The notes beneath the pieces were generated by a model. It was not told the DNA's origin. It searched no databases and saw only the letters and a list, made by a program, of their open reading frames with translations. From positions 20,832,001 through 20,896,000 of the forward strand of contig OZ116709.1 in NCBI GenBank assembly GCA_964199315.1: DNA of 64,000 bases, written 5' to 3'. Positions 19,130 through 61,491 of this stretch are shown piece by piece; position 1 is the stretch's first letter; every line of letters starts with the position of its first letter. This stretch comes from Orbicella franksi. Taxonomy: Eukaryota. The translations under genes and the position numbers were made by a program.

Positions 19130-19429
19130 CTGAAAATAAGAACAAGAACATGACTGCATATAGGAATCACAATAACATCAATGTACCTCGGTCTCAGGCA
19201 CAATTATTTTGCAACAACCAGACAAAGAAATAAACTTACGGGAGTCCACCGTTAACGCTGCTACGATATCCTTTCAAATTGCAATCCCTCGAAACGCGAG
19301 GAATTTCAAACTTTTCAAACTTAAGGGAAGATAGACAAACCGTCTTTTAAAGAATACCTTCCCACTAGGCAAACCATTGCATTGCACCAAGAGGAACACT
19401 GATTTAAAACTCTGGAAACTGTCACTTAC

Positions 19430-24047: not shown

Positions 24048-26874
24048 TCAACAAGGGTATTTTTCTTTTGGAAACAACTTTGGATAGCGATTTAGAGTTT
24101 TCCGTATCAGATGTTTGTTGCCAAGTTGTTCTACAGTCTGTCGGAGTTTGTAACACATTTGAAGTCCTTCTTTCATCGCCACCTCCATTTGGTCTTCCTT
24201 TCCTTCTTCTTCATGCAAGAGAGCTTGTTCAGTTTTTACCATGACTTTCCACATGTGATCCTCATCTAGTCTTCGCTCGGCAACGCGTTCCGCCTTTTCG
24301 AGTAGATTTCTTGCTTCTTCAAAGTTACCTTTGTTCTTGTGGCAAGCTCCGTAGTTTTTTAGAGTCAGAATACTCTCTTTATGACCATCCATCCCCAATT
24401 TTTTCATCATTTCTAGAGCCTTTTGGTAATACGATAGTGCGCTATCCAGTTCAGTCTTGTTTCCAGAGAAGAAAAGTAAGTCGGCAAAGTCTTTTAGGCA
24501 CTGTGCAGTCATAAAATGTTCACCAAGACACTTGTTGAAAAGCTGCCATGCTTGCTTGATCTTTTGGTCAGCCTCAATCTTTTCCTTGCGACGTTTATCG
24601 TGTCGTCCAGCAAATAGCAATGTTGCTGCTCTTTCAGGATGTTCAGGGAGTTTTTCTTTGCAGATCTCCAGTGATTTCAGGTAAACTTTTTTAGGTTCAT
24701 CTGGTACTTTGCTTTCTGAAAGAAATCGGGCATAGCTATGAAGATAAATGACTTCTGATAACGGTTTTGTCGCAAAATCAGTACCGTTTTCTTCATAGAG
24801 CTTTCTGGCTTTCTCCATATAGGCATTGTACTTTGCTGTGTCGCCTACTTTTCTAACTTCATGTCCAAGAAGGCACAAAAGTTCCACTCTGTGCACTGGT
24901 TGAGTTTCCGAGTCAAACGTTTCCAACAACCTTTCTAGGATGGAAATGTAAAATCTCGGAAGAACACACATTTCTAAATACATGCACTTTTGGGGAAAAT
25001 CATCGAGAAAAGTTTTACAGGATTCCACGATATCGACATCTTTCTTTTCCCTTCTTTGAGCGTAGATTTGAAGAAAATACTCGAAATTGTGCCTGTCCGC
25101 GTTAAATGCCTCAACTGACTCTCTGCAAGTGTTCTTACTCCAGTACCTATTGGCATTTTCAGCCATGCGAGACATAAAGTGAGCACACGCCAATTTGTCC
25201 CCCGCAGTAACAAGATGGGGATACTCAGCATCACCAAGCTTCTTTGCTAAAGCTTGAATAAGCGGATGCATCTGATACATTCGGGGGCTTAGTTGCTCGA
25301 GAAGTGATCTGTTTTTCAGGGAGCGAAGGATGGAACCAGGCACAGTTCCAGGAATCGAGCATGCTTCCATAACAGCCTCAGCGGCATCTGATGTAAATGA
25401 AACCGGGAGCAGAGACAGGAGAACGAAGGCTTCTTTATGTTCAGCTTGAGTCAGAAGGTCAAATGAGGTCTTGATTGCATTTTCTACTGATGTTTCATCG
25501 TCTTTCAGAACAGTCAAAGGCTGCTCCTCCAGGTGCTTTATTAGCTTTTCTTCCGTGAAGTCGGAGAGCAGTGATCCAACAATGCAAAGCGCCAATGGAA
25601 TCCCGCCACATAGCTCAACTAATCTTTCTGTCTTGCAAAGCTTATTTCGCATATCATTATCGTAGATTTGAGAGACAAGAATATGTTTTGCCTCATCGGC
25701 TAAAACCGGGTTTAGTCTTACTTCCCTCAACTGCAAATTGGGATCTTTAAATGTTTTTCTTGTAGTTATGACAAATGTCACCTTTTGCTTCGACAATATT
25801 CTTACCGCGCGTAAGATGTTTAGGAACAAACTTCGATCTTTCGACTCAAGGACACCATCTGCATTGTCGATGACAAACGTAACTTGCGTTTGCATCTGCT
25901 TGCTCCAGTCTTTGAGCCACTGCTTCGGATTCTCTGGCGCTTTTGTGTGGATTGTACCGCGTGAATGGATCATTTCTGTGGCTACTTCAGTGAAGGATCT
26001 CTGTGTCAGTAGACTGCAAAACAAGACAGTCCTCTCGTTTTCTGGTTTGGCTAGCTCATGAGCCACTTCGTTAGCCACAGTTGTCTTTCCAAATCCCGGT
26101 CCTCCGGTTATCAGAACAACAGGCACTGTGCCAGTTTCTACAATTTCTTTGACTTCCTTTATTTCTTTCTCACGACCAAACATAAGTTTCTCTGGTACTT
26201 TGTCTGGAAGAAAGCTGCAAAGATAAGAAGTAGCGTCGTCTGACTCGTCATTTTGTTCCACTCTCCTCCACTGTTCGACTTGCTCCGCCACCGCTCGTCG
26301 AGTGTCGTGATCGATGGGATCGTCCTTCAGGTCCTGTATTTTCTTTCGGTAGACACTAGTTTCAAGTGACTCTAAAGACGTGGATATCTTGCTCCACTTG
26401 TCTTCGAATTCGCCATTAGGAATACCGGTGGAAACACTGTGACACAGCTCATTCCTGAAGCATTTGATTCGGACGATGTTTGTTTCACGACTGACATCAC
26501 CATCCGCAGGCATTTTGTGCCATCCAGTTGGGGGCGCCGTTAGATGACAGATTTCACGAAGCAATAAATGCAACAGTATTATGTCGAACGTTTTCGAGTC
26601 TGGTGGATCACCTGAAGTAGGAAATAACTTTTCCCACTGGTCATCGAATATTACACGCCTGGATTTCAGACTCTGAAGCTTGGGAAGATTGTTGTTTAAT
26701 ACGTGGTGTAATGTCGCGGGTGGATGAACAGAATGTAAAACCTTTCTAAGAACATGTGTTCCTCCATCAACCAGTAATCGTGCCAGTCTTGTTCCATTTG
26801 TCTTTTTTTTCCGATACAGCATACACAGATGATCCAGATGCGCCAGCAGAAGAAGCTGCATCGGCAGCTGTCAT
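24048..26874 (-). CDS. NLR-like gene 2: HEPN-STAND-TPR, single exon, +1 frameshift in an A8 run near the start
   Basis: Near identical to gene 1 over most of its length. The homologous ATG (MTAADAASSAG..) at 26874 is out of frame because of the A8 run at 26803-26810. An alternative ATG at 26861 gives a 937-aa ORF with all domains. Ends KYPC* with no donor. Confidence 0.8.
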
Positions 26875-30522: not shown

Positions 30523-32624
30523 TCAACTCTCCTCCCCAGATTCTTCAGCGGCGCTTCTAAGCCAGTGGAAGAAGTCAGAACTGGCGGCTATGGCCAAGCC
30601 CTTGCCTTGTTCTTCTTCAACACTGCTTTCCCAAATGTTGAACGATTCCTCTGTGATGATCTCCTCATCATATAAACTGTCAAAATACGACTTGATGAAA
30701 CCTGGATGGGTTGAAAACAAAATAGGTTGATTAAACGAAAAAAAAGATACCACCGTCCGAAGAAACAGAATACATATACAACGTTTCGTTAGCTAGCAGT
30801 TTCGTGCCCTAAACACAGATCACTTAGTGGGGCTCAGTGGGTCACCGGGCCGTAATATGGTACCGTTGAAGGACCCCAATATGTCGTCTACTTAGAGCGG
30901 CTTACAAAATATCGCTGCACCAATGGGAGAGAGAGGGAGCCATGAGTATAATTTGTCATTTCCAACGTACTTTTGACTAACATGCATCAAATAAAAAGGG
31001 TCTAATAGTGTTCTGCCATTGCTGCTTAGAAGACGTGGCAAAAAAAAAAAAAAAAAAAAAAATAGGATTTCAAGAGATGAGTGAGCTGTGCTTGAAGATC
31101 GATCTTGTAACAGCAAACGCAAAATACCATGTCTGACTTTTTTCAGAAGAAACTTTTATTTTTTTTCCATCGCCTGTGTTTCAGCCCTCCCTTCCAGTCT
31201 CATATTTTCCGAGAGAGAAGACGACCAGAGGCGAGGAGACAACTTAAATTCAGGATTTTATCACTTTCTAGATTTTTTCGCAATAAGAGAAATGAGATTA
31301 CTAGACGTTCTTTGTTTCTATAAAATACTACCTAGATGGTTCTGAAAGTAAAAGCTTCGCAGTATAGTTGAACTCAAACACAACGAGTCGCCTTACGGGA
31401 ACTACGCCCAAAATCCATGAATTAATTATCTCGTTCCCCGACTGTTTGCGGTCCCGTTTCACAGAACATCGTAGCACAAGTGACAGGAGTAGACTAGAAT
31501 TCACGAATATGGCCTAAATAGGCTCGAGACACTTAGGTTTTGGTCGCACGGAAATTTGAAGAGGAATAATTAGGTACTCAGCTTATTCTCGGATTACTAT
31601 CTCGATTACATCACGCGGCAAATTATGAGAGGCTTTCAAACGGGACAAGATCGTAGATAAACAACAAGTTTTTGCACTTGTACCTGGCGGGTGTTCCAGC
31701 TGGACAAAGAGTGCCTGTACCGCGAAAAGAGCTTGGAGCTCTAGATTGGTGTCGTCGTCAATATACTTTCGGAGGAGATTTCTTCTGTTTTTCAAGCGAC
31801 CAAGGTTGCATTTACACTGGCCTCCGTCTTCTTCTGGAGAAAACAAAGGATAACAAATAAGTAAAAGAATGTTTTCACTAAGCAAAACAGACAAACTCGC
31901 AATCATGGTAACTAACCTCTATCCATTGTGTCTTCACAGACTACCGTTACCAGAGCTCTAATGAACGGAATCTCTCTGGTATCCGCTGCACAAAGATTTT
32001 CCTAGCGAAATTAAAGGAAATAAATTAACCACATTGACTTTTACCACCATAAAATGCGCATATCTTTGCACGGCATTAGGGAAGAGTTGATATGAGTTGA
32101 TTGGCCAGCTCAGGATCGTGCTAGCTGATGATGATACTCCAACATAACCTGCTTCTGATATACCTTTTACTAAGCTCGTCTTCTCGGTCCGTACTGTAAG
32201 ATACGGACCGAGTTTTTTTCCCCATCGATTTAAGGGCAAAGTGCGAAGCGAACGGACCATAAATCGAAGGGGTAACCATCATGGTATCTTACCAATAATC
32301 CTGAACGTTATTTTGCCGGGTATTTTATCGAGAAAATACAGTGATACAACATTTACAGCTCTACCTTATAGACCCGGTGTTTATAAGAAATCCGACGGCG
32401 TTTACATGTAATCGAGAAACAACAATGGTACGATATTTCTCACTTACACTTTTTTGATGCAACACACTTACATTGATCCATTCGAATACTCCTTCGTTAG
32501 AAGCTTTCCTTTCCAATATAAGAGTCCTAAGATCGTCCTGTATTCCATCAAAGTATTGACTGGACGAAGCAGTGATCTGTGGTGCCGAATTGGCCTGCTC
32601 AAGGCAAAATTCAATATTAATATT
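30523..32624 (-). CDS. EIF4G-like: Four eIF4G C-terminal (W2) exons, copy B
   Basis: Exons 32472-32624, 31917-32001 (donor gttagt), 31684-31830 and 30523-30701 have the same lengths (153/85/147/179) as copy A, no stops and GT-AG ends. AATAAA at 30354-30359 on the minus strand. Confidence 0.85.
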
Positions 32625-34056: not shown

Positions 34057-34166
34057 CTGAAAATAAGTACAAGAACATGAGTGCATATAGGAATCACGAT
34101 AACATTAACATACTTCGGTCTCAGGTACAATTATTTTGCAACAAGCAGACAAAGAAATAAACTTAC

Positions 34167-36892
34167 GGGGCAAGCGATCTTGTTCATTCTTCACTTCGAC
34201 TTTCCACTTGTGATTCTCATCTAGTTTTATCTCAGCAATCCGTTCCGCCTTTTGGAGTAGATTTCTTGCTTCTTCAAAGTTGCTTTTCGTTCTGTGGTAA
34301 GCTCCGTAGTTTTTTAGAGTCAGAATACACTCTTTATGACCATCCATCCCCAAATTTTTCATCATTTCTAGAGCCTGTTGGTAATGCAATGGTGTTCTAT
34401 CCGATTTAGTCTTGTTTCTGGAAGAGAACAATAAGTCGGCTAACTCTTTTAGGCACTGTGCAGTCATAAAATGTTCACCAAGACACTTGTTGAAAAGCTG
34501 CCATGCTTGCCCAAACTTATGGGCGGCCTCATTCTCTTCCTTGCAACGTTTATCATGCCGTCCAGCAAATAGCAAAGTTGCTGCTCTTTCAGGATGTTCA
34601 GGGAGTTTTTCTTTGCAGATCTGCAGTGATTTCAGGTAAACTTTTGTAGTTTCATCTGGTGCTTTGCTTTCTTGAAGAAAACGGGCACAGATATTAAGAT
34701 AAATGACTTCTGACAATGGGTTTGTCTCAAAATCAGCACCCTTCTGTTTATACAGCTTTCTGGCTTCCTCCATATAGGCATTGTACTTCGCTGTGTCACG
34801 GCCTATTTTTCTAACTTCATCTCCAAGAAGGCACAAAAGTTCCACTCTGTGCACTGCTTGAGATTCTGAGTCAAATGTTTTCAACAATCTTTCCAGAACA
34901 GAAGTGTAAAATCTCGGAAGAACACATATTTGTAAATACATGCACTTCTGGGGAAGATCGTCGAGGAAGGTTTGACCGGATTCCACGATATCGCGATTGT
35001 TCTTTTCCCTTCCTTGAGCGTAGATTTGCAGAAAATGCTCAAAATTGTTCCTGTCCTCGTTAAATGCCTCAACTGATTCTCTGCAGCTGTCCTTACTCCA
35101 GTAGCTATTGGCATTTTTAGCCAAGCGAGACATAAAGTGAGCACAGGCCAATTTTTCTCCTCCAGCAACAAGATGGGGGTACTCGACTTCGCCGATATTC
35201 TTTGCAAAGGCTTGAATAAGTGGATGCATCTGATATCTCCTGGGGACTGGCTGCTCGAGAAGTGATCTCTTTTTCAGAGCGCGAAGGATCAAACCAGGCA
35301 GAGTTCTAGAGATCGAGCATGCTCTCATAACAGTCTCCGCAGCCTCTGAATTAAATAGACCCGAAAACACAGACATGAGAACGAAGGCTTCTTTGTGTTC
35401 AGGTTGAGTCAGAAGGTCAAACGAAGTCTTGATTGCATTTTCCATTGATCTTTCAGGGTTTTCATCGTCTTTCAGAACAGCCAAAGGTTGCTCCTCTAGG
35501 TGTTTTATGAGCTCTTCCTCGGTATAGTCTGAAAGCAACGGTCCCACAATGCAAAGCGCCAAAGGAACACAGCCACACAGCTCAACAATTTTTTCAGCTC
35601 TGGAAAGCTTCAGTCGGACATCTTGATCACTGACTCGCGAGACAAGAATGTTCTCCGCCTCCTCGACTGATACCACTTTCAGTACTACCTCCTCCGACTG
35701 CAGGGCAGGATCAGTGAATGCTTTTCTTGAAGTAATGACGAATTTCACATTTTTTTCTCGGTGACCTTCGTACGTCACTTAACATCTTTAAGAACGAACT
35801 TCGATCTTCGGACTCAAGCACACCATCTGCATTGTCGAGGACAAACGTGACTTGCGTTTTGATCTGTTTGCTCCAGTCTTTGAGCCACTGTTCTGGATTC
35901 TCTGGCACATGCGTGTGGATTCTGGCGCAGGAATCGATCATTTCTGTAGCTACTTCATTGGCCTTTCTCTTTGTACGTAAGCTGCAAAAAAAGACAGTCC
36001 TTCCGTTGTCTTGGTTGGCTAATTTATGAGCCACTTCTTTGGCCACGGTTGTCTTTCCAAATCCCGGTCCCCCGGTTATCAGGACAACACCAACTGTTCC
36101 ACTCTGTACGATCTCTTTGACTTGCTGTATTTCTCGGGTACGACCAAACATAAATTCCTCTGGCAAGTTGTCTGGAAGGCAGCTGGAAAGTTCCGGCATA
36201 ACTGAAAGAGACCCTTGAATATGCGAAATGTCAGCTTTCATCTTCAGCATGGTGTCCTCTAAGCTCTCTACTCGTGGTTCAATGTCAAGTTTACACTTAT
36301 TTACTTCCTCTTCTATACGACGTTTAGTGTCATGGTCAATTGGTTCAGTCTTCAGACGGTCTACTTCGGTTTGGTCGAGGCCCAAGGCCACCAGTGCCGA
36401 AGAAACGTTATTCCATTTGTCTTCAAACTCGTCTTTAGCAATGTCTGTAGAAACGCTGTGGCACAGATCATTTCTGAAGCGTTTGATTCGGACGAGGTTT
36501 GCTTCAAGACTAACATCACCATCTGCAGGCATCTCTTTCCATCCTGTTGCGGGCTCCGTCAAGTTACAAATTTCACGAAGCAGTAAATGCAACAGCGTTA
36601 TGTCGAACGCTTTCGAGTCTGGTGGAGCACCCGAAGACGGAAATAACTTTTCCCACTGGTCATCGAATATTACCCGCCTGGATTTCAGACTTTGAAGCGT
36701 TGGAAAATGGTTGTTTAATACGTGCTGTAATGTCGCGGGTGGATGAACAGAATGTAAAACCTTTCTAAGAACATGTGTTCCTAGATCAACCACTAGTCGT
36801 GCCAGTCTTGTGCCATTCGTCTTTTCTTCCGATACATCACACACAGATGAACCAGAGGAATCAGCAGAAGCTGCTGCGGCGGCAGCTGCCAT
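34167..36892 (-). CDS. NLR-like gene 3: HEPN-STAND-TPR, C-terminally truncated, one frameshift (~35750-35770); probable exon 1 of the second eIF4G fusion
   Basis: ORFs 35711-36934 and 34105-35778 join with a 1-nt shift beside an A7 run. HEPN RNDLCH, Walker A/B and CGCVPLAL present. The TPR region breaks at KNEQDRLP and meets a phase-1 GTAAGT donor at 34166. Could be a pseudogene or an assembly indel. Confidence 0.75.
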
Positions 36893-37149
36893 GTTTGTTG
36901 CTGACTGAGACTTTTCGAAGTAATGTGCTGTCAAAGCACCTTTTCCGAAAGATGTGGTTTCAAAAATAATATCCGAGCTAAAGTACGAGTTAAGACTTAC
37001 ATGACTTACATTGCTGCAGCCTGGACCACTGAGTCCATTTCGAAGTGTATCAGATGTGTTAGATCCGTTCGGTTCGTTTCTAGTAAAACGTGTTAAAATA
37101 TTAAGAAACTACTTGATGATAAAGCACTTTCAAGTTTCGAGAACGACTC

Positions 37150-43536: not shown

Positions 43537-45426
43537 AGCATTACATGACTTACATTGTTACAGTCTGGACCACAGAGTCCATTTCGAAGTGTATCAGATG
43601 TGTAAGATCCGTGCGGTTCATTCTAGTAAACCGTCTTAAAATATTAAGAGACTAATTGATAAGAAAGCACTTTCAAGTTTCGAGAACGACACTTTCAGTT
43701 TCTGAGAAAGACTCATGATTAATTCGTGAGTTAAATTCGCATATGCTTGTCTCGGGCTGTCACAGGTTTGCCTGTGCTTGCCTCATTTTTGACAGGGTTC
43801 AGCATTTCGGCCAATAAAACACGACTTTCGTGCGTGGCCATGTTTACCGACTTCAGGCAATGAAGCAAGACTGTAAACTATTAACGACAATTTATTTGCT
43901 CTCTGGCGATTTCGTCATATATAATTCATTCATTTTTACCCATAGGTCCTATTTCTTTTTTGCAAATTCATTTAAATTAAGTCTTGTTCCATTGCCACAT
44001 CGCATCACTCTCCACAGTTTTTCGGAAAGAAAGCAATGACAACGCCGTTTTACCGAAACTTCTTGCGCTCGGAACAGGCGGTAAATAACCCTTGCTCACA
44101 AGCTCTTTGTACGTAACACGATACCTTTAATTTCAAGCCAATCACTGAGTTGTCCGTGGATGTGTGACGCCTTAAAATAGCTTTCAAGCAACAAAGCGCA
44201 ATTAAGCGTCTTTTTGTCAAGAATCAACACGCGACTAATCTGTTCTTCATTGTATTCATTATGCTTTCATTTTTACCCAAATGTCTCATTTCTTTTCTGC
44301 AAATTATTCGTATGGATGACCCTTGAGCTATGATAGCAACGATACTTCAATAGTGATTCCAGAGACTTGTTCTATAAATTGCCACATCGCATCACTCTCC
44401 ATAGTTTCTCGGAAAGAAACTTGGAACACCCGGTGAATATTCCTTGTTCACCTTTTGTCCCCTAATTAACACGATACCTTTAATTTTAAGCCAATCAGCT
44501 GGTTTACTCACGCTTTAAAAAAGCTGTCAAGTAACAAAGAGCAGTCAAGCACTTTTTTTGTCAAGAATCAATACGCGACCAATCTATTGTTCATTGTAAT
44601 CATTATATACATCATACGGTTTCGAAGAGCAGTGAGAAATGGCGAAGGGTAACTCTTCCCAATACTGGTCTGGATATCTTACTCAGGGTCGCTTCAAGCC
44701 ATTCTCTTCTACATACATTTCCAGCTTTGTTTTGGTTTAGTCTGCTTTATTGTGACTGTGCGATTTTCTTTTCAGTTACGTAAATTAGTAATGGCGCACA
44801 TGTAGAGTGCGTCGCCATTGAAATATTCTTCTCAGTCCGTATTCTCTATCACACCTGCCAATCATTCAGTTAACAGAGCAAGTACGAATTTTTGTCTGAA
44901 GGAAACCGACGAAGGCTTAGCGTAACCTTAAGTCGGTTATATTTTCATCACAGACGGACACCTTACACTACGTCTACATTTTAATTTTCAGAGACACTAT
45001 ACAACTAAAGAACTTTGCCGAGAAAAATATCTTCAAACGTACGCGAACAAAAATTAATATTGGCATACCACAACATAGGTGAGGATCAGTGTCTATTCCC
45101 CTAGACGGTATTTTTCATCACCGCAGGTAAAGTAGTTTAAAACTCAAGATAACGGCATTGTTTCTATTCTAAAATCAAAAAAAGTAGCGAACCTATGTAA
45201 CAGACAGGCCTTCGTTCATTTCTTTTGCCGGTGTAACTATTGTAAGAGTCACCCCAACTTGTAGTAATAACATTGCTGACAAAATGGTTCTTATATATGG
45301 AAACTTGTGATATGACTCATCCTAAAGAGGATAAACTGCTTTTTGAAAAGTCAGTTTGATAGTTTACATCTAAAGTAAAGATCTTCTCAGTTATTTCTCT
45401 TTGAGTTACAGCGGGCATATGGCCTT

Positions 45427-48249
45427 TCAACGAGGGTACTGTTCTTTTGGAAAAAACTCTGGATAACGATTTAGAGTTTTCCGTATCAGATGTTTGTTGC
45501 CCAGTTGTTGTACAGTCTGTCCCAGTCTGTAACACATTTGAAGTCCTTCTTTCATCGCTATCGCCATTTGGTCTATCTTTCCTTCTTCTTCATACAAGAG
45601 AGCTTGGTCAATTTTTACGATTGCTTTCCACTTGTGATCCTCATCTAGGTCTCTCTCGGCAACACGTTCCGCCTCTTCGAGTAGATTTCTTGCTTCTTCA
45701 AAGTTACCTTTCTTCTTGTGGCAAATTCCGTAGTTTTTTAGAGTCAGAATACTCTCCTTATGACCCTCCATCCCCAATTTTTTCATCATTTTTAAAGCCT
45801 TTTGGTAATAGGATAGTGCTCTGTCCAGTTCAGTATTGTTTCCAAAAAAGAAAAGTAGGTCGGCAAAGTCTTTTAGGCACTGTGCAGTCATAAAATGTTC
45901 ACCAAGACACTTGTTGAAAAGCTGCCATGCTAGCTTCATCTTTTGGGCAGCCTCACTCTTTTCTTTGCGACGTTTATCGAGTCGTCCAGCAAATAGCAAA
46001 GTTGCCGCTCTTTCAGGATGTTCAGGGAGTTTTTCTTCGCAGATCTGCAGCGATTTCAGGAAAACATTTTTAGGTTCATCTGATACTTTGCTTTCTGAAA
46101 CAAATCGGGCATAGCTGTGAAGATAAATGACTTCTGACAAAGGATTTGTCTCAAAATCAGTGCCCTTCTCTTCATAGAGCTTTCTGGCTTCCTCCGTATA
46201 GGCATTGTACTTTGCTGTGTCGCCTACTTTTCTAACTTCATGTCCAAGAAGGCACAAAAGTTCCACTCTGTGCACTGGTTGACTTTCAGAGTCAAACGTT
46301 TCCAACAACCTTTCCAGGATGGAAATGTAAAATCTCGGAAGAACACACATTTCTAAATACATGCACTTTTGGGGAAAATCATCGAGAAAAGTTTTACAGG
46401 ATTCCACGATATCGCCATCCTTCTTTTCCCTTCCTTGAGCGTAGATTTGAAGAAAATACTCGAAATTGTTCCTGTCCGCGTTAAATGCTTCAACTGACTC
46501 TCTGCAAGTGTTCTTACTCCAGTACCTATTGGCATTTTCAGCCAGGCGAGACATAAAGTGAGCACACGCCAATTTGTCCCCCGCAGCAACAAGATGGGGA
46601 TACTCAGCATCACCAAGCTTCTTTGCTAAAGCTTGAATAAGCGGATGCATCTGATACATTCGGGAGCTTGGTTGCTCGAGAAGTGATCTGTTTTTCAGGG
46701 AGCGAAGGATGGAACCAGGCAGAGTTCCAGGAATCGAGCATGCTTCCATAACAGCCTCAGCAGCATCTGATTTAAATGAACCCGGCAACAGAGACAGGAG
46801 AACGAAGGCTTCTTTATATTCAGCTTGAGTCAGAAGGTCAAATGAGGTCTTGATTGCATTTTCCACTGATGTTTCATCGTCTTTCAGAACATCCAAAGGC
46901 TGCTTCTCCAGGTGCTTTATTAGTTTTTCTTCCGTGAAGTCGGAGAGCAGTGATCCAACAATGCAAAGCGCCAATGGAATCCCGCCACATAGCTCAACTA
47001 ATCTCTCTGTCTTGCAAAGCTTATTTCGGATATCATGATCGTAGATTCGAGAGACAAGAATACTCTTTGACACATCGACTGAAACTGGGTTTAGCCTTAC
47101 TTCCCTCAACTGCAAATTGGGATCTTTAAACGTTTTTCTTGTAGTAATGACAAATGTCACCTTTTGCTTCGACAACATTCTTACCGCCTGTAAGATGCTT
47201 AGGAACGAACTTCGGTGTTTCGACTCAAGGACACCATCTGCATTGTCGAGGACAAACGTAACTTGCGTTTGGATCTGCTTGCTCCAGTCTTTGAGCCACT
47301 GCTCCGGATTCTCTGGCGCTTTTGTGTGGATTGTACCGCATGAATGGATCATTTCTGTGGCTACTTCATGGAAGGATCTCTGTGTCAGTAGACTGCAAAA
47401 CAAGACAGTCCTCTCGTTTTCTGGTTTGGCTAGCTCATGAGCCACTTCGTTAGCCACAGTTGTCTTTCCAAATCCCGGTCCCCCGGTTATCAGGACAACA
47501 GGCACTGTGCCAGTTTCTACAATTTCTTTGACTTCCTTTATTTCTTTCTCACGACCAAACATAAGTTTCTCTGGTACTTTGTCTGGAAGAAAGTTGCAAA
47601 GGTTAGAAGTAGCGTCGCACTCGTCATGTTGTTCCGCTCTCCTCCACTGTTCGACTTGCTCCGCCACCGCTCGTCGAGTGTCGTGATCGATGGGATCGTC
47701 CTTCAGGTCCTGTATTTTCTTTCGGTAGACACTAGCTTCAAGTGACTCTAAAGACGTGGATATCTTGCTCCACTTGTCTTCGAATTCGCCATTAGGAATA
47801 CCGGTGGAAACACCGTGACACAGCTCATTTCTGAAGCATTTGATTCGGACGATGTTTGCTTCCAGACTGACATCACCATCCGCAGGCATTTTGTGCCATC
47901 CAGTTGGAGGCGCCGTTAGGTGACAGATTTGACGAAGCAATAAATGCAGCAGCGTTATGTCGAACGTTTTCGAGTCTGGTGGATCACCTAAAGTTGGAAA
48001 TAACTTTTCCCACTGGTCATCAAATATTACCCGCCTGGATTTCAGACTTTGAAGCTTGCGAAGATTGTTGTTTAATACGCGCTGTAATGTCGCGGGTGGA
48101 TGAACAGAATGTAAAACCTTTCTAAGAACATGTGTTCCTCCATCAACCAGTAATCGTGCCAGTCTTGTGCCATTCGTCTTTTCTTCCGACACAGCATAGA
48201 CCGATGATCCAGAGGAACCAGCAGAAGAAGCTGCGGCGGCAGCTGCCAT
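45427..48249 (-). CDS. NLR-like gene 5: intact single-exon HEPN-STAND-TPR (~940 aa)
   Basis: Likely start MAAAAAASSAG at 48249; RNELCH, GGPGFGKT, FVLDNAD, CGGIPLAL, MHPL, TPR-like helices; ends EQYPR*. Confidence 0.92.
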   Translation of the reverse strand: MAAAAAASSAGSSGSSVYAVSEEKTNGTRLARLLVDGGTHVLRKVLHSVHPPATLQRVLNNNLRKLQSLKSRRVIFDDQWEKLFPTLGDPPDSKTFDITLLHLLLRQICHLTAPPTGWHKMPADGDVSLEANIVRIKCFRNELCHGVSTGIPNGEFEDKWSKISTSLESLEASVYRKKIQDLKDDPIDHDTRRAVAEQVEQWRRAEQHDECDATSNLCNFLPDKVPEKLMFGREKEIKEVKEIVETGTVPVVLITGGPGFGKTTVANEVAHELAKPENERTVLFCSLLTQRSFHEVATEMIHSCGTIHTKAPENPEQWLKDWSKQIQTQVTFVLDNADGVLESKHRSSFLSILQAVRMLSKQKVTFVITTRKTFKDPNLQLREVRLNPVSVDVSKSILVSRIYDHDIRNKLCKTERLVELCGGIPLALCIVGSLLSDFTEEKLIKHLEKQPLDVLKDDETSVENAIKTSFDLLTQAEYKEAFVLLSLLPGSFKSDAAEAVMEACSIPGTLPGSILRSLKNRSLLEQPSSRMYQMHPLIQALAKKLGDAEYPHLVAAGDKLACAHFMSRLAENANRYWSKNTCRESVEAFNADRNNFEYFLQIYAQGREKKDGDIVESCKTFLDDFPQKCMYLEMCVLPRFYISILERLLETFDSESQPVHRVELLCLLGHEVRKVGDTAKYNAYTEEARKLYEEKGTDFETNPLSEVIYLHSYARFVSESKVSDEPKNVFLKSLQICEEKLPEHPERAATLLFAGRLDKRRKEKSEAAQKMKLAWQLFNKCLGEHFMTAQCLKDFADLLFFFGNNTELDRALSYYQKALKMMKKLGMEGHKESILTLKNYGICHKKKGNFEEARNLLEEAERVAERDLDEDHKWKAIVKIDQALLYEEEGKIDQMAIAMKEGLQMCYRLGQTVQQLGNKHLIRKTLNRYPEFFPKEQYPR

Positions 48250-48481
48250 GTTTGTTGCTGACTGAGATTCCTCGAAATAATATACTGTCGAAGCACCTTT
48301 TCCGATAAATGTCGTTTTCAAAGCTTACATGGCTGCAGCCTGGACCATTTCGAAGTGTATCAGATGTGTTAGATCCGTTCGGTTCGGTCGTAGTAAAACG
48401 TGCTAAAATATTAAGAAACTACTTGATGATAAAGCACTTTCGGATTAGAAAAAAGACCCTTTCAGTTCCGAAGAAAGACTC

Positions 48482-48492
48482 TTTCAGTTTCC
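48482..48492 (-). promoter_or_regulatory. ISRE-like motif upstream of gene 5
   Basis: tttcagtttcc, with degenerate neighbours at ~48460 and ~48510. Confidence 0.45.
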
Positions 48493-49369
48493 GAGAAAGA
48501 CGACAGCTGTTTTCAGTTCGTGTGTCAAATTAGCATATGCCTCTCTTATTTCAGACAGGGGTCAATGCTTCCACCAATAGAACACCACTGAGCTCTTGTG
48601 CATTGTCATGGTTAACGAGTACAGAGTATGATTGGAAACGGTAAACGGTCAGTGACAACGCATTTTTTTTCTGCCTGTTTCGATTTCACTGTAAATGCTT
48701 TCATTTTTACCCATATGTCTCATTTCTTTAATTTTCTGCAAATTATTCGTATGGATGACCCTTGAGTTATGATAGGTACGATACCTCAATATTGAGTCCA
48801 CATTGCATCACTCTCCATAGTTTCTCGGAAAGAAACTTGAAACAGCCGGTGAATATCCAGTGTTCACCTTTTGTCCCGTGATTAACGCGATACCTTTAAT
48901 TTTAAGCCAATCACTAAGTTGTCTGTGGTTTACTCACGTCTTAAAATAGCTGTCAAGCAACAAAGTGCAATCAAGCACTTTTTTGTCATGAATCAACACG
49001 CAACTAATCTGTTGCTCATTGTATTCATTATATGCATCATACATTGTTAATGTTTTCATTGTTTCGAAGAGCACTGGTAAATGGGTCGTTGATAAAATGG
49101 AAATGGAATGATGACCTATATTAGCCAGCGCGGGGTAACTCTTCCGAGTACTGACCTGGATATCTTATTCAGTGTTGCTTCAAACCATTCTCTTGTACAT
49201 ACGTTTACAGCTTTGTTTTGCTTTGGTCTGTCATATTGTGAGTGTGGGTTTTCTTTCCAGTTACGTGAGTTAGTAATGGAGCACATGTAGAGTGCTTCGT
49301 CATTGGAATAATCTTCTTTGTCCGTATTATCGACCTGCCAATTATTCAGGTACATGATGCATTACGGCA

Positions 49370-53845: not shown

Positions 53846-54148
53846 CTGAAATGTATTAGTGAAAACAAAAGATCATTTAGGAATCACCACAGCACTGATA
53901 TACTGCGGCCTCACTGAGGTACGATCAATTTGTAACAACAGACAAAGAATTGCGAAATAAAGGACTTCCGCCGTTACCACCGATACTATCTTTTTGTAAA
54001 TTGCATTTTATGGTCAAGTGAAGGCTAGACACCTTGCGAGGCAAAGATAAAGAAACCATCTAGAAGACTACTTTAATTTCGGACCAGACAAACGATTGCG
54101 CTGTTCTCAGTAACTACTGGTTTCAAAGCTCTGAAAATCGTTACTCAC

Positions 54149-56942
54149 TTGGAAATTCTATCTCCGGGAACGTCTGTGGATGACGATTAATGAATACTAG
54201 TATTTCGTATTTGTTGCCCATCTCATCTATTTCCAGATCTAGCTTTTTGCCCATCGAAAACCCTTCATGCATCACGGCTTTCGCCTGGTCTACATTTCCC
54301 ATTTTGTCATGTAAGGTGGCTAGTGCAGTCTTTGTCTTGACTTTCCATGTGTGACAAGGTTCTAATTCTTTCTCGGCAATCTCGTCTGCCTCTGTAAGTA
54401 AAGCCATGGCCTCATCTAAGTTACCCTTCCTCATGTGGCACATTCCAAAGTTCTTTAGAGTCGAGATACTCTCTTTGCTTTGTCTAAATTCAAGGTCCTC
54501 AAATATTTCAATAGCCTGTGCATAATAAGTAAGGGATTTGTCCAACTCGGTCTCGCTCTTCTGACGAAAAAAGTTACCGGCGTGAAGGTCCGCAATGGCC
54601 TTGAGAATTTCAGCAGTCATAAAGTGCTTCCCAAGGCACTTTTTAAAGAGTTCCCACGCCGCAAAAAACTTCTGTTCTGCTTCATCCCATTTTTTACGAC
54701 GTTGTGCAATTATTCCTGCTAATAAAAGAGTTGCTGCTGTTTCCGGGTGATCGCCTAGGTTTTCACGGCTGACTTTCAACGCAGCTTCAGTTTCTTGATC
54801 TCTTCTTTTGTTCTCAAGGGGGTCTTTCTTGCCCGAAAAAAAGCGAGCACAACTGTTGCGGAAATAAGTTTCTGATAATGGATGTGTTTCAAAGTCAACA
54901 CGATTCTTTGTATGAATTTCTTCGGCCTCCCTCATGAACTCTTGGTAATTTTCCCTGTCTCCTTTTTTCCTGCTTTCGTGTCCAAGAATACACAAAAGTT
55001 CCACTCTGTGCACTGGCTCAGATTCTGAGTGAAACATTTCCAACAATCTTTCCAGAACAAAAATGTAAAATCTCGGAAGAACACACTTTTCTAGATACAT
55101 GCACTTCTGGGGAAGATCATCAAGGAAAGTTTTACAGGATTTCACAATTTCTTGGTCTTCGATATTCCTTGGCATGTGAGTGTAAACTTGAAGGAAGTAC
55201 TCGAAGTTGTGCCTGTCCTCATTGAAGGAGTCCACAGACTGTTTGCAGGTGTCCTTGCTCCAGTAGAGATAAGCGTTGTCAGCAAGGCGAGAAATGAAGT
55301 GCGCACAGGCCAGTTTCTCTCCCAGATCTAAGAGGCCAGGATACTTGTCCGAGGCGATCTTCTGCACAAATGTTTGAATGAGCTGATGTACCTGGTATCT
55401 GCATGGTCTCAACTGCTCGACAAGAGATCTGTCTTTCAATTCCTGTAGAACTGAGACTGATTTGGCATTTGTTGTACAGTTTGCAATCAAAGACTTGGCC
55501 GCATCAGAATTGAATGAGCCAGGAAAGACACATAACAGAACGAGGGCTTTTTGTTCCACTTCGTGAAGTATCTCAAAAGATCTCTTGATTGATTTTTCGA
55601 CTGAAGTTTGGTCGGTGGACCTTCTACCGACTTGGAGGACATCCGAGGGCTCATCTTCCAGACTTTGTATGAGTTCATCTTCATTATAGTCTGAGAGCAA
55701 CGAGCCAGCAATACAAAGGGCAATAGGGACAAAACCACAAAGCTCGACCAATTTTTCCACCTTGGAAAGTTTCGCCCGACTTTCCAAATCAGCGACTCGC
55801 GAAAGAAGAATCTGCTTCGCTTCTTCTACTGGCAAACAGGCTAATCGAACATTCTTAGATTGTGAACTGGTTGTGCTGCATGCCATTCTGGAGGTAATAA
55901 TAAACGTGACATTTTGTCCTGAAAGCCTTCTCATATTTTCCAAAAGGTTTAAAAACTCGTTTATACAATCACTGTCTTCAAGAACTTCATCTGCATTGTC
56001 AAGAACGAAAGTGACCCTCGAGCACTTTTGTTTGCTCCAGTTTAGAAGCCAATGTTGGGGATTCTCTGGTGGTTGCGTCTGGTTCTCACTGCAAGCAAGT
56101 GTCATTAACGTAGCTGCTTCACTCAGGCTTTTCGTAGACCTTAAGGAACAGAACAGTACTGCTCGTTCGCAGTCAAGCCTGGACAATTCATGAGCGGCCT
56201 TGTTAGCCACTGTGGTCTTCCCAAATCCCGGTCCGCCGGTAATCCAGACAACTGAGACTGATCCACTTTGTATGGCTTCTGTAACTTGTTGTGTCTCGTG
56301 TAAACGGCCAAACATAAGTTCTCCGGGAATTTCGTCTGGGAGGCAGCTTGGAACTTTGATGGACTTATCAAACTGTTCCCACTGATCGACTTGTTCCTCC
56401 ACTCGACGTTGTATGTCATGATCTATAGGATCGCTCTTCAGGCGCTCAATCTTCTGTCGGTAAGCGTATAGCTCAAGTGCCTCTAAGCAAGAAGATACTT
56501 GCTTCCATTTCTCTTCAAATTCATCATTGGGAACGCCGGTAGAGGTACCGTGACATAGCTCATTACGGAAGCATTTGATTCTTGCAATGTTGGCCTCTAC
56601 GCTGTCATCATCTTCGGTGGGCATTTTGTGCCATCCAGTTAAAGGTGCCGTCAAATGACAAATTTCTCGAATCAACAAATGCAAAAGCGATATATCAAAA
56701 GTATCTGAGTCTGGTGGGTCTCCTGATGAAGGAAATAACTTTTCCCACTGGCTATCAAATATTACACGGCTCAGCTTCAGACTATGAAGTTTTGGACGGT
56801 TTTTGCTTAAAACGATCTGTAATTTATCGCGAGGATAAATGGAATGAAGGAACTCTTTTAGAACATGCGTTCCTCCATCAACCAGAAGTCGTGTCAGTCT
56901 TGTGCCATTTGTCTTTTCTTCGGATACATCATAAACCGCCAT
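54149..56942 (-). CDS. NLR-like gene 6: divergent HEPN-STAND-TPR, probably spliced onward
   Basis: RIKCFRNELCH, GGPGFGKT, FVLDNAD, CGFVPIAL, YQVHQLI. The apparent stop at 54141 lies in a GTGAGT donor (CCA A|gtgagtaa) at the same EFP position as in gene 1. Confidence 0.9.
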
Positions 56943-58686
56943 GTTTCGTTGCTTGCTAAATTCTTAGAAATGATCTGCTGTCGAAGCACCTTTTCCCAGA
57001 AATGTCGTTTCCAAAATGATATGCAAGCTAAAGTTCGGATTAAGCCATGTCTACCTTGCTGCAGCCTGGACCACTAATTCATGATCAATCACGAAGTTTA
57101 TCGAGTCAGACCTTTGAACGAAGATTCTGCTATCTTTCATGGGTATGTTCGTATAAAGGGCAAACCAGATCGTCAAAAAAATATTTATAGAAACCGCTTG
57201 ATGATGAAGCACTTCTGGTTTCCGAGAAAGACAAATTAGCATATGCTACTTAAGAAGAGTCAAATTAGCATATGCCTGTCTTATTTCAGACAGGGGTCAA
57301 TGCTTCCCCCAAACTTGCTCGTGACAGTCAAGCACCTGAAACGATCGTCACAAGCATTACCTTCTTGTACGTCAAATTATACAATACGTGTGACGACATC
57401 TGTTTATATTGTTACCATTGTGTGGTCGGCTCTGCCGTCACAGATTTTTAATTGGACTTCCTGTATGGGATCATGGCTATAGGATTACAGTGATTTTCCT
57501 TGTACATGTGTATGTTTGTGTACTTGTTTAAAGAAAAAATGACCGTCACGGGTTTTACATAATGTAACAGCGCCAACCAATAGAGCATGGTGCATGCAGT
57601 AGGGTGTACCGACTACAGGCAATGCAAACTATTAGTCAGATTTCACTTTTATATATGTTTTTTTCATTTCTGCAAATGCATTTCAAGCTTGAGCCCTGAG
57701 TTATGGAGGGTGCGATACTAAAGAGACTTGTTCTATAAAATACCGCACTGCAGGGCTTTTTGAAGTTTCTCGGAAAGCAAATGATGACAACGACGTTCCT
57801 CGGAAACTTCATTCACCTGGAGCAGTTGGCGATAACCCTTTGTCTCCACTGAGTTGTCTATAGATAGATAAAAAAAACTCCTTTGTATAGCTGTCAAGCA
57901 ACAATGCGCAATCAAAGCGCTTTTACTTCAAGAATCGACATACGACTAATTTATATGGTTCATTGCGTTTTCCATATTGGCCCTGTTGTTTCCAGTTACA
58001 ATGCAAATTTTTCGGTGATAAAATGGAAGTTAGACCAAGTTAGTATGACGACCGATTGGTACTCTTCTTACTTGATAGTCGCACATACAAGTCATTCTCT
58101 TGTATGGCATAGGTCCCCAAATTTTTTTGCTTTGGTCTGCTTTAGTGCTTGCATGTTTATTTTGTTGTATTTACATTATAACAATGATGTAAATGTAGAG
58201 TGCGTCGTCATTGGAATAATAGATTTCTGTCTGTAATGTCGCATGCAGTAGTCGGCGTATTCGTCGACCAGACCTGCCAATAATTCAGTTACATTATGTA
58301 TTACAACATGCTAAATCGACTTCCGTTGATTGAGGGAAACAGATGCATGGGTCACTGACCCCATTGCTATTTGTATTTTGAGGGGGCGGGGATGGGCAGT
58401 TTAAGACCAAACTCTGCAACATCAATTTTAATTGAACTTTTTCAGCGTGCACTTCAATGTTGACAGTTTGGAAGAGATGAATTCATTGTGCACTTCATGT
58501 ATACCTTGACAAATCAATGTGTGATAGTTACACGATGTCCTTACCCATGATCTGACCACAAATAACGCGGGCTCTTAAAAAAGTAATCTGAATTATCGTA
58601 ATTCTCTTGAATGACTCGTAAGTTGTTTCTGATTTGAGAATTAGAGGCGTTCGTTAAGCTTTTTCTGACCACAAAGCTTCGTAAAG

Positions 58687-61491
58687 ATGCCGCCCATTCT
58701 TGATGCTTCGGAGGAAAAAACAAATGGCTCAAGGCTGTTGCGATTAGTGATTGATGGAGGGACATACGTGCTAAGAGAGTTTCTGCATTCCATTCATCCT
58801 CCTGCAGCATTACAGGCAGTGTTCAACAACAACAAAGGAAAGCTTACAAAACTGCATTCGACGAAGAAAATTATAACCAGAAGTCAGTGGGAAATCCTAT
58901 TTCCCCCTTCAGGTGACCCACCAGACTCGAAATCATTTGATGTCACACTTCTGCATCTGTTACTACGGGAATTTTGCAGTTTGACGGCGCCTTCAACTGG
59001 CTGGCACAATTTACCTGCAGACAGCGATGTTAGTCCTCAGGCGAACATTGTCCGAATCAAATGTTACAGAAATGAGCTTTGTCACAGTGTTTCTACAAGC
59101 ATTACTGAAGTCGAGTTTGAAGACAAATGGATGGTCCTTTCTTCGGCACTGGTTGCCTTGGGCCTCGACCAAAAGGACGTAGACCGCCTGAAGACTGAAC
59201 CGATTGACCATGACACTGATCGTCGTGTAGAGGAGGAAGTAAATAAGTGGAAACTTGAAATTGAACCACGATTAGAGAGCTTAGAGGAAGACGTAGTGAA
59301 GATGAAAGGTGAAATGTCGCGGAATCAAGCAGACCAAAATACTTCTGAACTTGCAGACTGTCTTCCAGATAAAGTTGCAAATGTCTTTGGTCGCTCAAAA
59401 GAGATACAGCAGGTCATCCAGCCCATTGTAACCAGGCATGTAGGCACTGTTATAATAACTGGGGGACCAGGGTTTGGAAAGACAACCGTGGCTAACAAAG
59501 TGGGGCACGAGCTGGCCACCAACCCAGAGAATGTTGTTTTGTTTTGCTCTCTCAGGACGAAAGCAACAGTAAATGAAGTAGCTACCTCAATGATCCTTAC
59601 GTGCAGCAAAAACCACTTTCAGCCACCAGAGAACCCCCAACACTGGCTTCGAAATTGGAGCAAGCAACAGCAACAAAGGGTTACCTTCATTCTGGACAGT
59701 GCAGACGATGTTCTCGAATCAGGCGACCGAGCTGGGTTTGCAAGCCTTTTGCAAGACATGAGGATGTTAGCCAAAGGTAATGTTACTTTTGTTGTCACTT
59801 CTCGAAAAGTATTTAAGCATTCAAGCCTGGAGATGGCAGAAGTAAGAGTAACACCTTTATCCTCCGATGAGGCAAAGAAACTTGTTGAGTCTAAAGTTGA
59901 TGAAGGTGTGCGGGTGAAGCTCTCTCAGACAAAGAAGCTAGTTGAGCTATGTGGTTGTGTGCCTCTGGCTCTCTGCATCGTTGGTTCGTTGCTTTCAGAC
60001 GTCTACACTGAAGATGAGCTGATAAGACGTTTGGAGGAAAAGCCAATGGATGTCCTTAAAGAGGATTTGAGTGATGACAATTCCGTTGAAAAAGCAATAA
60101 AAACTTCCTTTGACTCCTTGGGTAAAAGCGAACTAGAGGCCCTGCTTCTTCTGTCTGCATTTCCTGGCTCCTTTGATTCTACTGCTGCTAAGGCTTTGAT
60201 TACATCATCATGCACTGAACAGCCACAATTGATCCTTCGTTCCTTGAAGAACCGGTCACTCGTTGAGATGACAGCTCCACAGAGATATCAAGTCCATCAG
60301 CTGATCCAAGCATATGCAAAGAAGATTGACCAAACCAAGTATTCCAAGGGAGAAAAAGAGGCCTTTGCGCACTTTATTTCCCGCCTTGCAGACAATGCCA
60401 ATATATACTGGAGCAAAGACAAGTGCAAAGAGTCAATTGAATCGTTTAATGAAGACAGGCACAGCTTTGAGTACTTCCTAAAGTTTTACCTGCAAGGATT
60501 AAACTGTCAAGATCATCAATACCTCATGACAAATTTGACGACCTTAGTGGAGGAGTTTTCCCAAAAATGCCTGTATCTGGAAATGTGTCTTCTTCCAAGC
60601 ATTTATGTCAAGCTCCTGGAAACATGGCTTGACCTTCTAAAGTCCGACAACACCCCACAACAGCCCACCAGCAAGATAGTGGAGCTTTTGTGCTTGCTTG
60701 GGCATGAAAAAAGAAAAGTTGGAAATCGTGATCAATATAAACACTTTCTAGAGGAGGCCATAAAACTGCACACAGAAAATCCAAATGAGTTTCACCGAGA
60801 AAAGGTATCAGAAGCCTTTTTTCGCAATAATTATGCTCGATTTCTCTCCGAAGAGAGGAACTTTGATAAAGCAGAAGAACAATTTGACATTGGTTTGAAA
60901 GTATGTGAAAATTATTTGCCTAAAGATCATGTACAGAAAGGTGTCACTTTGCTTTATTCTGGAAGAGAAGACAACCGTCGTAATGAACGTAATGAGGCCG
61001 AGAAAAAGTTGAATGAAGCATTGAACCTTTTTCAGAAGGGTCTTGGCACACATGTTATGACTGCCCTTCTTCTGAAAGATCTTGCAGATTTTCACCTTTT
61101 CCACGGTGACAAAAAACTGGGATCTTCAGAGGACCGTCAAAACTCCATTAAACTGTATGGACAAGCACTCGAAATGATGGAAAATCTTGGCATTAAAGAC
61201 CACAAAGAGTGCATTCTGCCATTTACCAACCTAGGAATTTGTCATCAACTGCAAAATGAGCTGGAGGAAGCAATGAAATTATATCAAGCATCTTTGAACA
61301 TTGCAGAACGAGAATTAGGAGAAAATCACCGGTGGAAGATCTATGTGAAGGTTCAAATGGCCTACTGGTACAAACAGAATGGAAATATGGTAGAGGCAAA
61401 AGCATGCAAAGAACAGGCAATGAGGATGAGTGATGCACTTGGACTGCCAGATCATCAACCACCCAACAAGTTTTTGCTAAAGAAAATTTGA
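58687..61491 (+). CDS. NLR-like gene 7: divergent single-exon HEPN-STAND-TPR (934 aa), head-to-head with gene 6
   Basis: RIKCYRNELCH, coiled-coil-like linker, GGPGFGKT, FILDSAD, CGCVPLAL, YQVHQLI, TPR-like helices (AMKLYQASLNIAEREL). Confidence 0.92.
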   Translation: MPPILDASEEKTNGSRLLRLVIDGGTYVLREFLHSIHPPAALQAVFNNNKGKLTKLHSTKKIITRSQWEILFPPSGDPPDSKSFDVTLLHLLLREFCSLTAPSTGWHNLPADSDVSPQANIVRIKCYRNELCHSVSTSITEVEFEDKWMVLSSALVALGLDQKDVDRLKTEPIDHDTDRRVEEEVNKWKLEIEPRLESLEEDVVKMKGEMSRNQADQNTSELADCLPDKVANVFGRSKEIQQVIQPIVTRHVGTVIITGGPGFGKTTVANKVGHELATNPENVVLFCSLRTKATVNEVATSMILTCSKNHFQPPENPQHWLRNWSKQQQQRVTFILDSADDVLESGDRAGFASLLQDMRMLAKGNVTFVVTSRKVFKHSSLEMAEVRVTPLSSDEAKKLVESKVDEGVRVKLSQTKKLVELCGCVPLALCIVGSLLSDVYTEDELIRRLEEKPMDVLKEDLSDDNSVEKAIKTSFDSLGKSELEALLLLSAFPGSFDSTAAKALITSSCTEQPQLILRSLKNRSLVEMTAPQRYQVHQLIQAYAKKIDQTKYSKGEKEAFAHFISRLADNANIYWSKDKCKESIESFNEDRHSFEYFLKFYLQGLNCQDHQYLMTNLTTLVEEFSQKCLYLEMCLLPSIYVKLLETWLDLLKSDNTPQQPTSKIVELLCLLGHEKRKVGNRDQYKHFLEEAIKLHTENPNEFHREKVSEAFFRNNYARFLSEERNFDKAEEQFDIGLKVCENYLPKDHVQKGVTLLYSGREDNRRNERNEAEKKLNEALNLFQKGLGTHVMTALLLKDLADFHLFHGDKKLGSSEDRQNSIKLYGQALEMMENLGIKDHKECILPFTNLGICHQLQNELEEAMKLYQASLNIAERELGENHRWKIYVKVQMAYWYKQNGNMVEAKACKEQAMRMSDALGLPDHQPPNKFLLKKI

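Follow-up and report, generated by a model that had tools for sequence, protein, structure and literature searches.

Organization of the gene cluster

We analyzed 64 kb of genomic DNA from the coral Orbicella franksi (the window), which a whole-genome search placed at C12:20832001-20896000 of a 497-Mb scleractinian coral assembly and which carries a tandem family of genes for proteins with an N-terminal HEPN domain, a STAND NTPase and a C-terminal TPR region. By open reading frame (ORF) listing and tblastn, seven copies of one gene family, encoding ~940 amino acids (aa) on a single large exon, were identified between 19.4 and 61.5 kb (c1-c7; Table 1). Copies c1-c6 are on the minus strand, and c7, the only plus-strand copy, faces c6 head-to-head. 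A six-frame motif scan of the 64 kb found RN[ED]LCH, GGPGFGKT and F[VI][LI]D[NS]AD exactly once in each copy, with no occurrence outside the seven copies, and these counts, together with the Pfam matches described below, place the family far beyond chance. The seven members, their positions and motifs and the HEPN-STAND-TPR domain reading had been proposed in an initial annotation of this DNA, and all were recovered here by tblastn, motif scan and Pfam (HEPN_DZIP3, NB-ARC/NACHT/NPHP3_N and TPR_12).

The initial annotation had also described all seven members as near-complete, which holds for c1, c5, c6 and c7, all uninterrupted in the nucleotide alignment, and has to be amended for the other three. 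The frame of c2 begins at an alternative ATG, the canonical start having been put out of frame by one additional A in an A8 run (near 26810); c3 is split into two ORFs; and c4 is a true pseudogene. Since the frame changes of c2 and c3 sit in A8 and A7 homopolymers, they could be assembly errors. The status of c3 is uncertain, as its frameshift may be such an error; in the nucleotide alignment this copy has also lost 53 bp from the large-exon end (near 34170), and its ratios of nonsynonymous to synonymous substitution (dN/dS) are 0.19-0.44 against c5, c6 and c7.

An eighth copy, with an intact 966-codon frame containing RNDLCH, GGPGFGKT and FVLDNAD, was found ~5 kb past the window end. At the end of the window lies a decayed relic of the family, the single matches of which are weak (best E 0.005-0.05), the argument for it being their colinear order. 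The locus is thus a tandem, recently reshuffled cluster of eight copies on a chromosome arm plus a relic. A relic had previously been placed inside 19422-61491. In that range, neither tblastn (E<=1) nor a family-profile search of the gene-masked six-frame translation revealed a coding relic; the range does contain a duplicate of the family 5' flank, devoid of coding sequence, which may be what had been termed the relic.

The HEPN domain

The N-terminal domains matched Pfam HEPN_DZIP3 (PF18738) with 172-179 bits (cut-off 27 bits) and E-values of 5e-53 to 7e-51, from profile positions 1-3 to 142-144 of 144. Across 115 aligned coral homologues, conservation is highest in the HEPN segment, and R126, N127 and H131 are kept in 98-99% of them (residue numbering follows c6, the template for all structure models). 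The AlphaFold2 model of c6 aa 1-200 is all-helical, with a predicted local distance difference test (pLDDT) score of 87, and puts the RNxxCH motif (126-131) at the end of helix 115-130 (helix 3) and in the loop that follows. The Rx4-6H motif of HEPN domains has been described from the end of core helix 3 or the start of the loop to helix 4, with N favoured after R (Anantharaman 2013, PMC3710099), and the c6 motif is predicted in the same position. When the model was compared with Swiss-Prot models, the only significant matches were residues 383-596 of human and mouse DZIP3 (E 4.5e-7, template modelling (TM) score 0.67, 22% identity). Vertebrate DZIP3 (hRUL138) is the name-giving member of PF18738; it is a RING E3 ligase that lacks a STAND NTPase, whereas the coral proteins lack a RING.

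A HEPN homodimer was predicted for c6 aa 1-200 with an interface score (ipSAE) of 0.72, compared with 0.00 for the best control. Three runs shared at least 71% of the contacts, with a partner pLDDT of at least 84. Among the microbial proteins used for calibration, 21 of 30 solved homodimers and none of 23 monomers reached the mark, as did 7 of 16 animal pairs. The predicted interface comprises residues 126-127, 130 and 133-134, D83-86, H/L89 and helices 11-23 and 146-169. R126, N127 and C130 thereby fall within the modelled interface, which is the placement that the initial annotation had required of RxxxxH, and the model supports self-binding of the domain.

The NB-ARC switch and the TPR region

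The STAND NTPase aligned with positions 2-247 of the 248 in the Pfam NB-ARC profile, alongside partial NACHT, NPHP3_N and nSTAND matches. A model of c6 aa 200-600 (pLDDT 87) matched NB-ARC structures, including the wheat, tomato and Arabidopsis resistosomes, CED-4, Apaf-1 and Dark, with Foldseek E-values of 1e-13 to 1e-10, a probability of 1.00 and TM scores of 0.64-0.70 over 364-409 columns. Among the 115 homologues, GGPGFGKT, FVLDNAD, T350/R352, P406-I-A-L409 and Y516..H519 are each at least 95% conserved. Judged by their sequence, they may be read as an NB-ARC motif set of P-loop, Walker B, sensor-1 TxR, G-[GFC]-[IV]-P-[LI]-A-L (GxP) and Y-Q-[MV]-H (the MHD position).

Membership of the NACHT family was considered and rejected. 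The NACHT match in Pfam is partial (2-133 or 2-161 of 167) and at best equals that of NB-ARC, and no NACHT protein occurs among the 50 fold matches listed, the top 38 of which are all NB-ARC apart from one MalT-system entry at rank 29. From the end-to-end NB-ARC alignment, the fold matches and the motif set, we assign the NTPase to the AP-ATPase/NB-ARC clade and not to NACHT; published surveys pool such genes as 'NACHT/NB-ARC'. The C-terminal part of the proteins, at aa ~800-915, matched TPR_12 with 57-75 bits, with partial matches to TPR_10, TPR_8, TPR_NPHP3 and TPR_MalT. Leucine-rich repeats (LRRs) are absent from the family proteins.

Expression and gene model of c1

The cluster is represented in RNA data. 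Fourteen RNA libraries from ~11 studies contain 55-68% of the words sampled from 14700-22400, and 80-83% of those from the c6-c7 stretch (54141-61491) are found in polyA RNA runs. In the polyA contig run X4, the depth over 14700-20699 was 100-580 in exons and 0-50 in introns. Contigs of X4 and X1 revealed five GT..AG joints on the minus strand, corresponding to introns 19130-19429, 18675-19093 (present in a single run), 17683-18585, 17098-17559 and 16927-17012. In the large c1 exon, the donor lies two codons before the stop of the unspliced frame, and the frame is open through all downstream exons. The spliced coding sequence (CDS) of 1198 aa was pieced together from separate contig joints, the last junction (16780>14906) being inferred. 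The c1 gene is thus a multi-exon gene in which the large exon is spliced to exons derived from eIF4G. That these form a separate neighbouring gene was ruled out for c1 by the RNA joint from 19430 to the first mini-exon, across which the frame is open. A single molecule running from HEPN to W2 lies beyond the resolution of contig-type RNA.

An insertion at 15100-16120, in the last intron of c1, is absent from the homologous region downstream of c3, and related pieces are found at 4417-4573 and 5855-5976. Given its inverted terminal matches and RNA-contig depths of up to ~12,000, it probably represents a multi-copy transposable element, with many loci contributing to the transcripts or to their assembly. 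At the 3' end of c6 (54141-54150), a consensus donor, CCA A/GTGAGT (the slash marks the splice site), occupies the position spliced in c1 (A/GTAAGT); c2 and c5 are without it. No W2 exons were found downstream of c6, and the donor may splice to other exons or be a fossil.

The eIF4G-derived W2 tail

Taken alone, the last exon of c1 matched Pfam W2 (PF02020) with 38 bits and an E-value of 1.8e-9 (cut-off 30). Ten W2 exon matches occur in the genome, and only two, both in the window, adjoin HEPN genes. The c1 tail corresponds exon for exon, at 52-85% identity, to four exons of a gene on C3. There an MA3 exon lies just upstream, which identifies an eIF4G-type gene as the source of the tail. The c1 mini-exon 18586-18674 derives from the inter-domain linker of eIF4G, and MA3 exons are absent from c1. 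The other W2 exon set is downstream of c3 (Table 1). The W2 tail on c1 and c3 is a previously unreported feature, confirmed for c1 from RNA contigs; a literature search found no publication pairing a W2 domain with NACHT or NB-ARC receptors. The HEPN-STAND-TPR layout first assigned to all members is therefore incomplete for at least one of them, c1, which has an added C-terminal W2.

Tails of this kind are also present in another coral. A contig of Desmophyllum pertusum carries three tandem family members, two of which (P0046 and the gene of P0121) are followed by W2 exons and share the EF[PT]RN junction with c1, and the P0046 tail has coral eIF4G1/3 as its database neighbours. In P0046, the last W2 exon (MU827408.1 17194-17366) shifts frame between 17268 and 17271, through a genuine frameshift or an error of the assembly; this accounts for the W2 score below threshold and the aberrant C-terminus of the protein as deposited. 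In a tree of the tails, c1 pairs with c3 and P0046 with P0121, in a polytomy with coral eIF4Gs that accommodates one old capture as well as two. The only points that would favour a single old capture of W2 are that the EF[PT]RN junction is shared and that the Desmophyllum genes lie in tandem.

C-terminal parts of eIF4G (MIF4G/MA3/W2 or W2 alone) are also annotated as fused to RING and/or B-box domains in the gene models of P0128 (a coral-associated JGI protein), P0137 (Mercenaria) and P0143 (Potamilus), which suggests that pieces of eIF4G have repeatedly been attached to immune-type scaffolds in marine invertebrates. Elsewhere in the genome, two near-identical W2 loci 19 kb apart (C4:32918837-32919427 and 32937976-32938559), each with a TGA inside its first W2 match, are a tandem duplicate of another W2 gene.

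Family size and evolution of the cluster

The coral genome holds at least 108 PF18738 matches, distributed over many tandem clusters and many architectures, with at least three size classes of open frames. Longer HEPN_DZIP3 families with tandem frames of 1400-1950 codons were found at C5:6.42-6.65 Mb, C6:7.22-7.39 Mb and C8:12.56-13.01 Mb. Among 8000 scored candidate proteins, 698 matched at E<=0.001, and the nearest named ones are from Desmophyllum, Orbicella, Oculina, Stylophora and Pocillopora. Orthologues of c6 are present at 80-99% in other data sets.

Within the cluster, c1, c2, c4 and c5 share 94-96% nucleotide identity (c2 and c1, 96%), with patchy tracts of 99-100% that point to recent duplication and gene conversion. 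The final ~300 alignment columns of c1, which take in the 3' flank and the end of the coding exon, bear no relation to those of c2, c4 and c5, and the last ~50 residues of the coding exon resemble the C-terminus of c6. The Nei-Gojobori dN/dS is 0.18 for old pairs (dS >1) and 0.40-0.66 for young pairs; by domain, the old pairs gave 0.11-0.26 outside the short linker and 0.37-0.40 within it. On these sequence comparisons the cluster fits a birth-and-death process under overall purifying selection.

The window is AT-rich (37-45% GC), and the family locus, at ~40% GC, does not differ from its surroundings. Bacterial contamination or a recent transfer was ruled out by the animal GT..AG introns, the GC content and hundreds of coral homologues. 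Other features of the window are an unrelated neighbouring gene with a 252-aa ORF (11613-12371, plus strand) containing a Neurensin/TMEM74 domain (PF14927, E 3.5e-12) and a 339-aa ORF (4703-5722, minus strand) with a weak RVT_1 match (E 1e-4, below the cut-off), probably a retroelement fragment. An Rfam scan of the 64-kb window gave no match.

Table 1. Members of the HEPN-NB-ARC-TPR gene family and associated features in the window
Feature	Position	Strand	Remarks
c1, large first coding exon	19430-22367	-	tblastn span 19422-22367; open frame; stop of unspliced ORF at 19422
c1, HEPN_DZIP3	aa 51-190		RNELCH at 21942-21959
c1, NB-ARC-type STAND	aa ~226-470		P-loop 21585-21608; Walker B 21360-21380
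c1, helical/TPR region			TPR_12 at aa 806-863
c1, downstream exons	19094-19129, 18586-18674, 17560-17682, 17013-17097, 16780-16926, 14728-14906	-	stop at 14728-14730
c2	24048-26861	-	937-aa open frame; all three motifs present
Second W2 exon set, downstream of c3	30526-32591	-	four matched exons all open, 75-92% identical to c1 tail
c3	34105-36934	-	two ORFs, split by +1 A in A7 run (~35749); motifs intact, RNDLCH
c4	39133-41907	-	2-bp deletion (~41814), three in-frame stops, 1-bp deletion (~39136); motifs still readable
Duplicate of family 5' flank/promoter region, without CDS	43535-44872	-	matches 48345-49352, 22454-22836 and 36991-37418
c5	45427-48321	-	intact; likely ATG 48249, ~940 aa
c6	54141-56942	-	intact, 933 aa; most diverged copy on the minus strand
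c7	58687-61491	+	intact, 934 aa; Walker B FILDSAD
Decayed, frameshifted relic	~63187-64000	-	HEPN N-terminus through P-loop region; colinear weak matches

Proposed mechanism and alternatives

Beyond the identity, integrity, conservation and transcription of these genes, we infer a mechanism. The HEPN-NB-ARC-TPR proteins are probably ligand-gated, oligomerising HEPN RNases, the most likely role of which would be intracellular sensing of non-self or stress, that is, innate immunity in the broad sense. The TPR region, together with the W2 tail in c1, would keep the switch shut in its ADP-bound state up to the point at which it senses a ligand or perturbation. By exchange of nucleotide, the NB-ARC modules would then become able to oligomerise into an apoptosome- or resistosome-like ring, bringing the N-terminal HEPN domains together as dimers in which paired Rx4H motifs would form metal-independent RNase sites, and cleavage of host or invader RNA would lead to translation arrest or cell death. 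Such a scheme may be likened to the activation of the HEPN/KEN domains of RNase L and Ire1 by induced dimerisation, and to the composite TIR sites of TIR-NLR resistosomes. The passage from oligomerisation through HEPN dimers to RNA cleavage had been put forward in the initial annotation and agrees with every in-silico test made here (R/N/H conservation, the helix-3 motif, the dimer and the fold); as an idea it is not new, having already appeared in print for this combination of domains (PMC3710099, PMC8260672, PMC10236652, PMC9646362).

Several observations weigh against this interpretation. In the literature searched, no RNase activity is reported for a DZIP3-type HEPN domain. Foldseek found no PDB match to the HEPN model at E<=0.001, the structural resemblance to solved HEPN proteins has a Z that is middling for a helical bundle, and a PDB sequence search with the HEPN profile returned only noise. 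H131 is not among the confidently contacting residues of the dimer model, and the dimer, being a model, may reflect memory of solved HEPN dimers. The expression evidence consists of contigs assembled from field or laboratory samples taken without challenge, and the raw-read runs X23 and X24, which carry another species label, gave 12 and 8 reads, all on a repeat. Diversifying selection was not seen in any domain, the TPR region included, the highest dN/dS being 0.81. The birth-and-death pattern initially taken as a sign of immune receptors is present in its pseudogene, one or two doubtful copies, relic and conversion tracts, and is without a dN/dS above 1.

It is possible, without being likely, that the same STAND-gated HEPN RNase serves instead in the control of retroelements or endogenous RNA, in allorecognition or in policing the dinoflagellate symbiosis. 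The many architectures and clusters in which HEPN_DZIP3 domains occur would suit such roles, as would the presence of family RNA in unchallenged colonies; published authors rate antiviral, anti-transposon and apoptotic roles as equally open, and fungal NB-ARC-TPR NLRs act in allorecognition. However, no feature of the locus points to any one of these roles, and the transposon fragments nearby are ordinary for such clusters. A second alternative, which we consider decidedly unlikely, is that HEPN is not a nuclease here and acts, like CARD or Death domains, as a homotypic adaptor or an RNA-binding module recruiting other HEPN proteins after oligomerisation. Dozens of HEPN_DZIP3 exons with short frames, found in other types of gene, could supply partners, self-association of the domain is predicted, and vertebrate DZIP3 is known as an RNA-binding E3 ligase and not as an RNase. 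An adaptor would nevertheless not require the R, N and H that are kept almost throughout the 115 diverged homologues, nor the Rx4-6H that 194 of 202 such domains keep in oyster. Finally, that the cluster is largely decaying duplicated DNA, its open frames being young duplicates yet to be disabled, would suit the dead c4, the blemished c3 and c2, the relic, the flank-only duplicate and the dN/dS of the young pairs, but is highly improbable given the low dN/dS and wholly intact catalytic and switch motifs of the old pairs, the c6 orthologues in other data sets, the spliced polyA RNA of c1 and the homopolymer position of the blemishes in c3 and c2, which may be assembly errors.

For the W2-tailed members, the ligand-gated RNase reading can be extended by a conjecture that we think unlikely but worth stating. 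The c1-type members (c1, c3 and Desmophyllum P0046/P0121) would be animal 'integrated-decoy' receptors that guard the translation machinery. In these the W2 bait would mimic the C-terminus of eIF4G, and a virus or a pathogen factor binding or cleaving eIF4G would set off the NB-ARC switch and thereby the HEPN RNase; the RING/B-box-eIF4G fusions would then be independent versions of the same arrangement. We know of no pathogen effector that targets coral eIF4G. As in plant NLRs carrying integrated domains, an NB-ARC receptor has been joined to part of an unrelated host protein (here the eIF4G linker and W2), and the coral tail was acquired as DNA with its introns. The coral case differs in its animal lineage and in the position of W2 after the TPRs, and a decoy function is here purely hypothetical.

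Relation to known systems

The architecture and its expansion in anthozoans have been published, and the locus is a well-resolved example of a known design. Fusions of the DZIP3 HEPN domain to TPR, NACHT, CARD, Death and LRR domains were described together with lineage-specific expansions in Nematostella and oyster, the catalytic residues being 'mostly conserved' (Anantharaman 2013, PMC3710099). Between 17 and 83 HEPN-NACHT proteins were counted per anthozoan species (Emery 2021, PMC8260672), and coral NB-ARC proteins were found mostly with TPRs, many also with an N-terminal DZIP3-like HEPN, in genomes shaped by tandem duplication (Noel 2023, PMC10236652). In pearl oyster, the 194 of 202 domains that keep Rx4-6H mostly have Rx4H with N after R, and an RNase and immune role was inferred by the authors (Takeuchi 2022, PMC9646362). 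None of these four papers reports a functional experiment on the domain. A Nematostella gene annotated as DZIP3, the architecture of which is not given, was the most down-regulated after antibiotic treatment, which is a hint only (PMC11114123). The present family has in common with the anthozoan and bivalve expansions the N-terminal PF18738, the STAND and TPR layout, the tandem lineage-specific expansion and the Rx4H with N. Those papers give genome-wide domain counts, and are without this locus, its conversion tracts, the NB-ARC motifs and the W2 tail.

With Apaf-1, CED-4, Dark and plant NLRs, the coral proteins share the logic of an N-terminal effector and a C-terminal repeat sensor around an NB-ARC fold. 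They differ in that the effector is HEPN and not CARD, CC or TIR, and the repeats are TPR and not WD40 or LRR; identity is 13-19%. The coral Walker B, D-N-A-D, is closer to the NACHT DGxDE pattern. For the proposed output step, RNase L and Ire1 are the best functional analogues. They likewise combine an RNase of the HEPN superfamily, a back-to-back dimer site and sensor gating with translation arrest or cell death, an output that for the coral proteins is proposed. Their dimerisation module, however, is a pseudokinase or kinase and not STAND, and KEN is a C-terminal, circularly permuted HEPN with no family-level relation to DZIP3 HEPN.

The layout had initially been compared with that of the bacterial Avs proteins. 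The likeness to Avs and bNACHT extends to the tripartite plan of effector, STAND and TPR or other repeats only, while the coral switch is of the NB-ARC type and closer to Apaf-1 and plant NLRs. Bacterial Avs and bNACHT proteins bind a conserved invader protein and oligomerise, whereupon an N-terminal nuclease or other effector becomes active, and HEPN-STAND fusions exist in bacteria (PMC3710099). The coral genes, in contrast, have animal introns, their NTPase is nearest to eukaryotic NB-ARC by fold search, and homology is found only at the superfamily level.

As a genomic observation alone, the cluster repeats published coral genome reports. In corals and bivalves, NLR-like genes with a HEPN tip rank with the most strongly expanded of the putative immune genes, and they pose the question whether animals use a STAND-gated RNase as bacteria use Avs-type or HEPN defence, or vertebrates RNase L. 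The compact, single-exon, intact and expressed c5, c6 and c7, with R126/H131 (HEPN), K242 (P-loop) and H519 (MHD-like) as mutational targets, together with a confidently predicted dimer, offer an entry to a first biochemical test. The W2-tailed member would allow integrated host-protein baits to be examined in animal NLR-like proteins and, if the integrated-decoy reading were true, would guard the translation machinery by the principle known from plant NLR-ID proteins.

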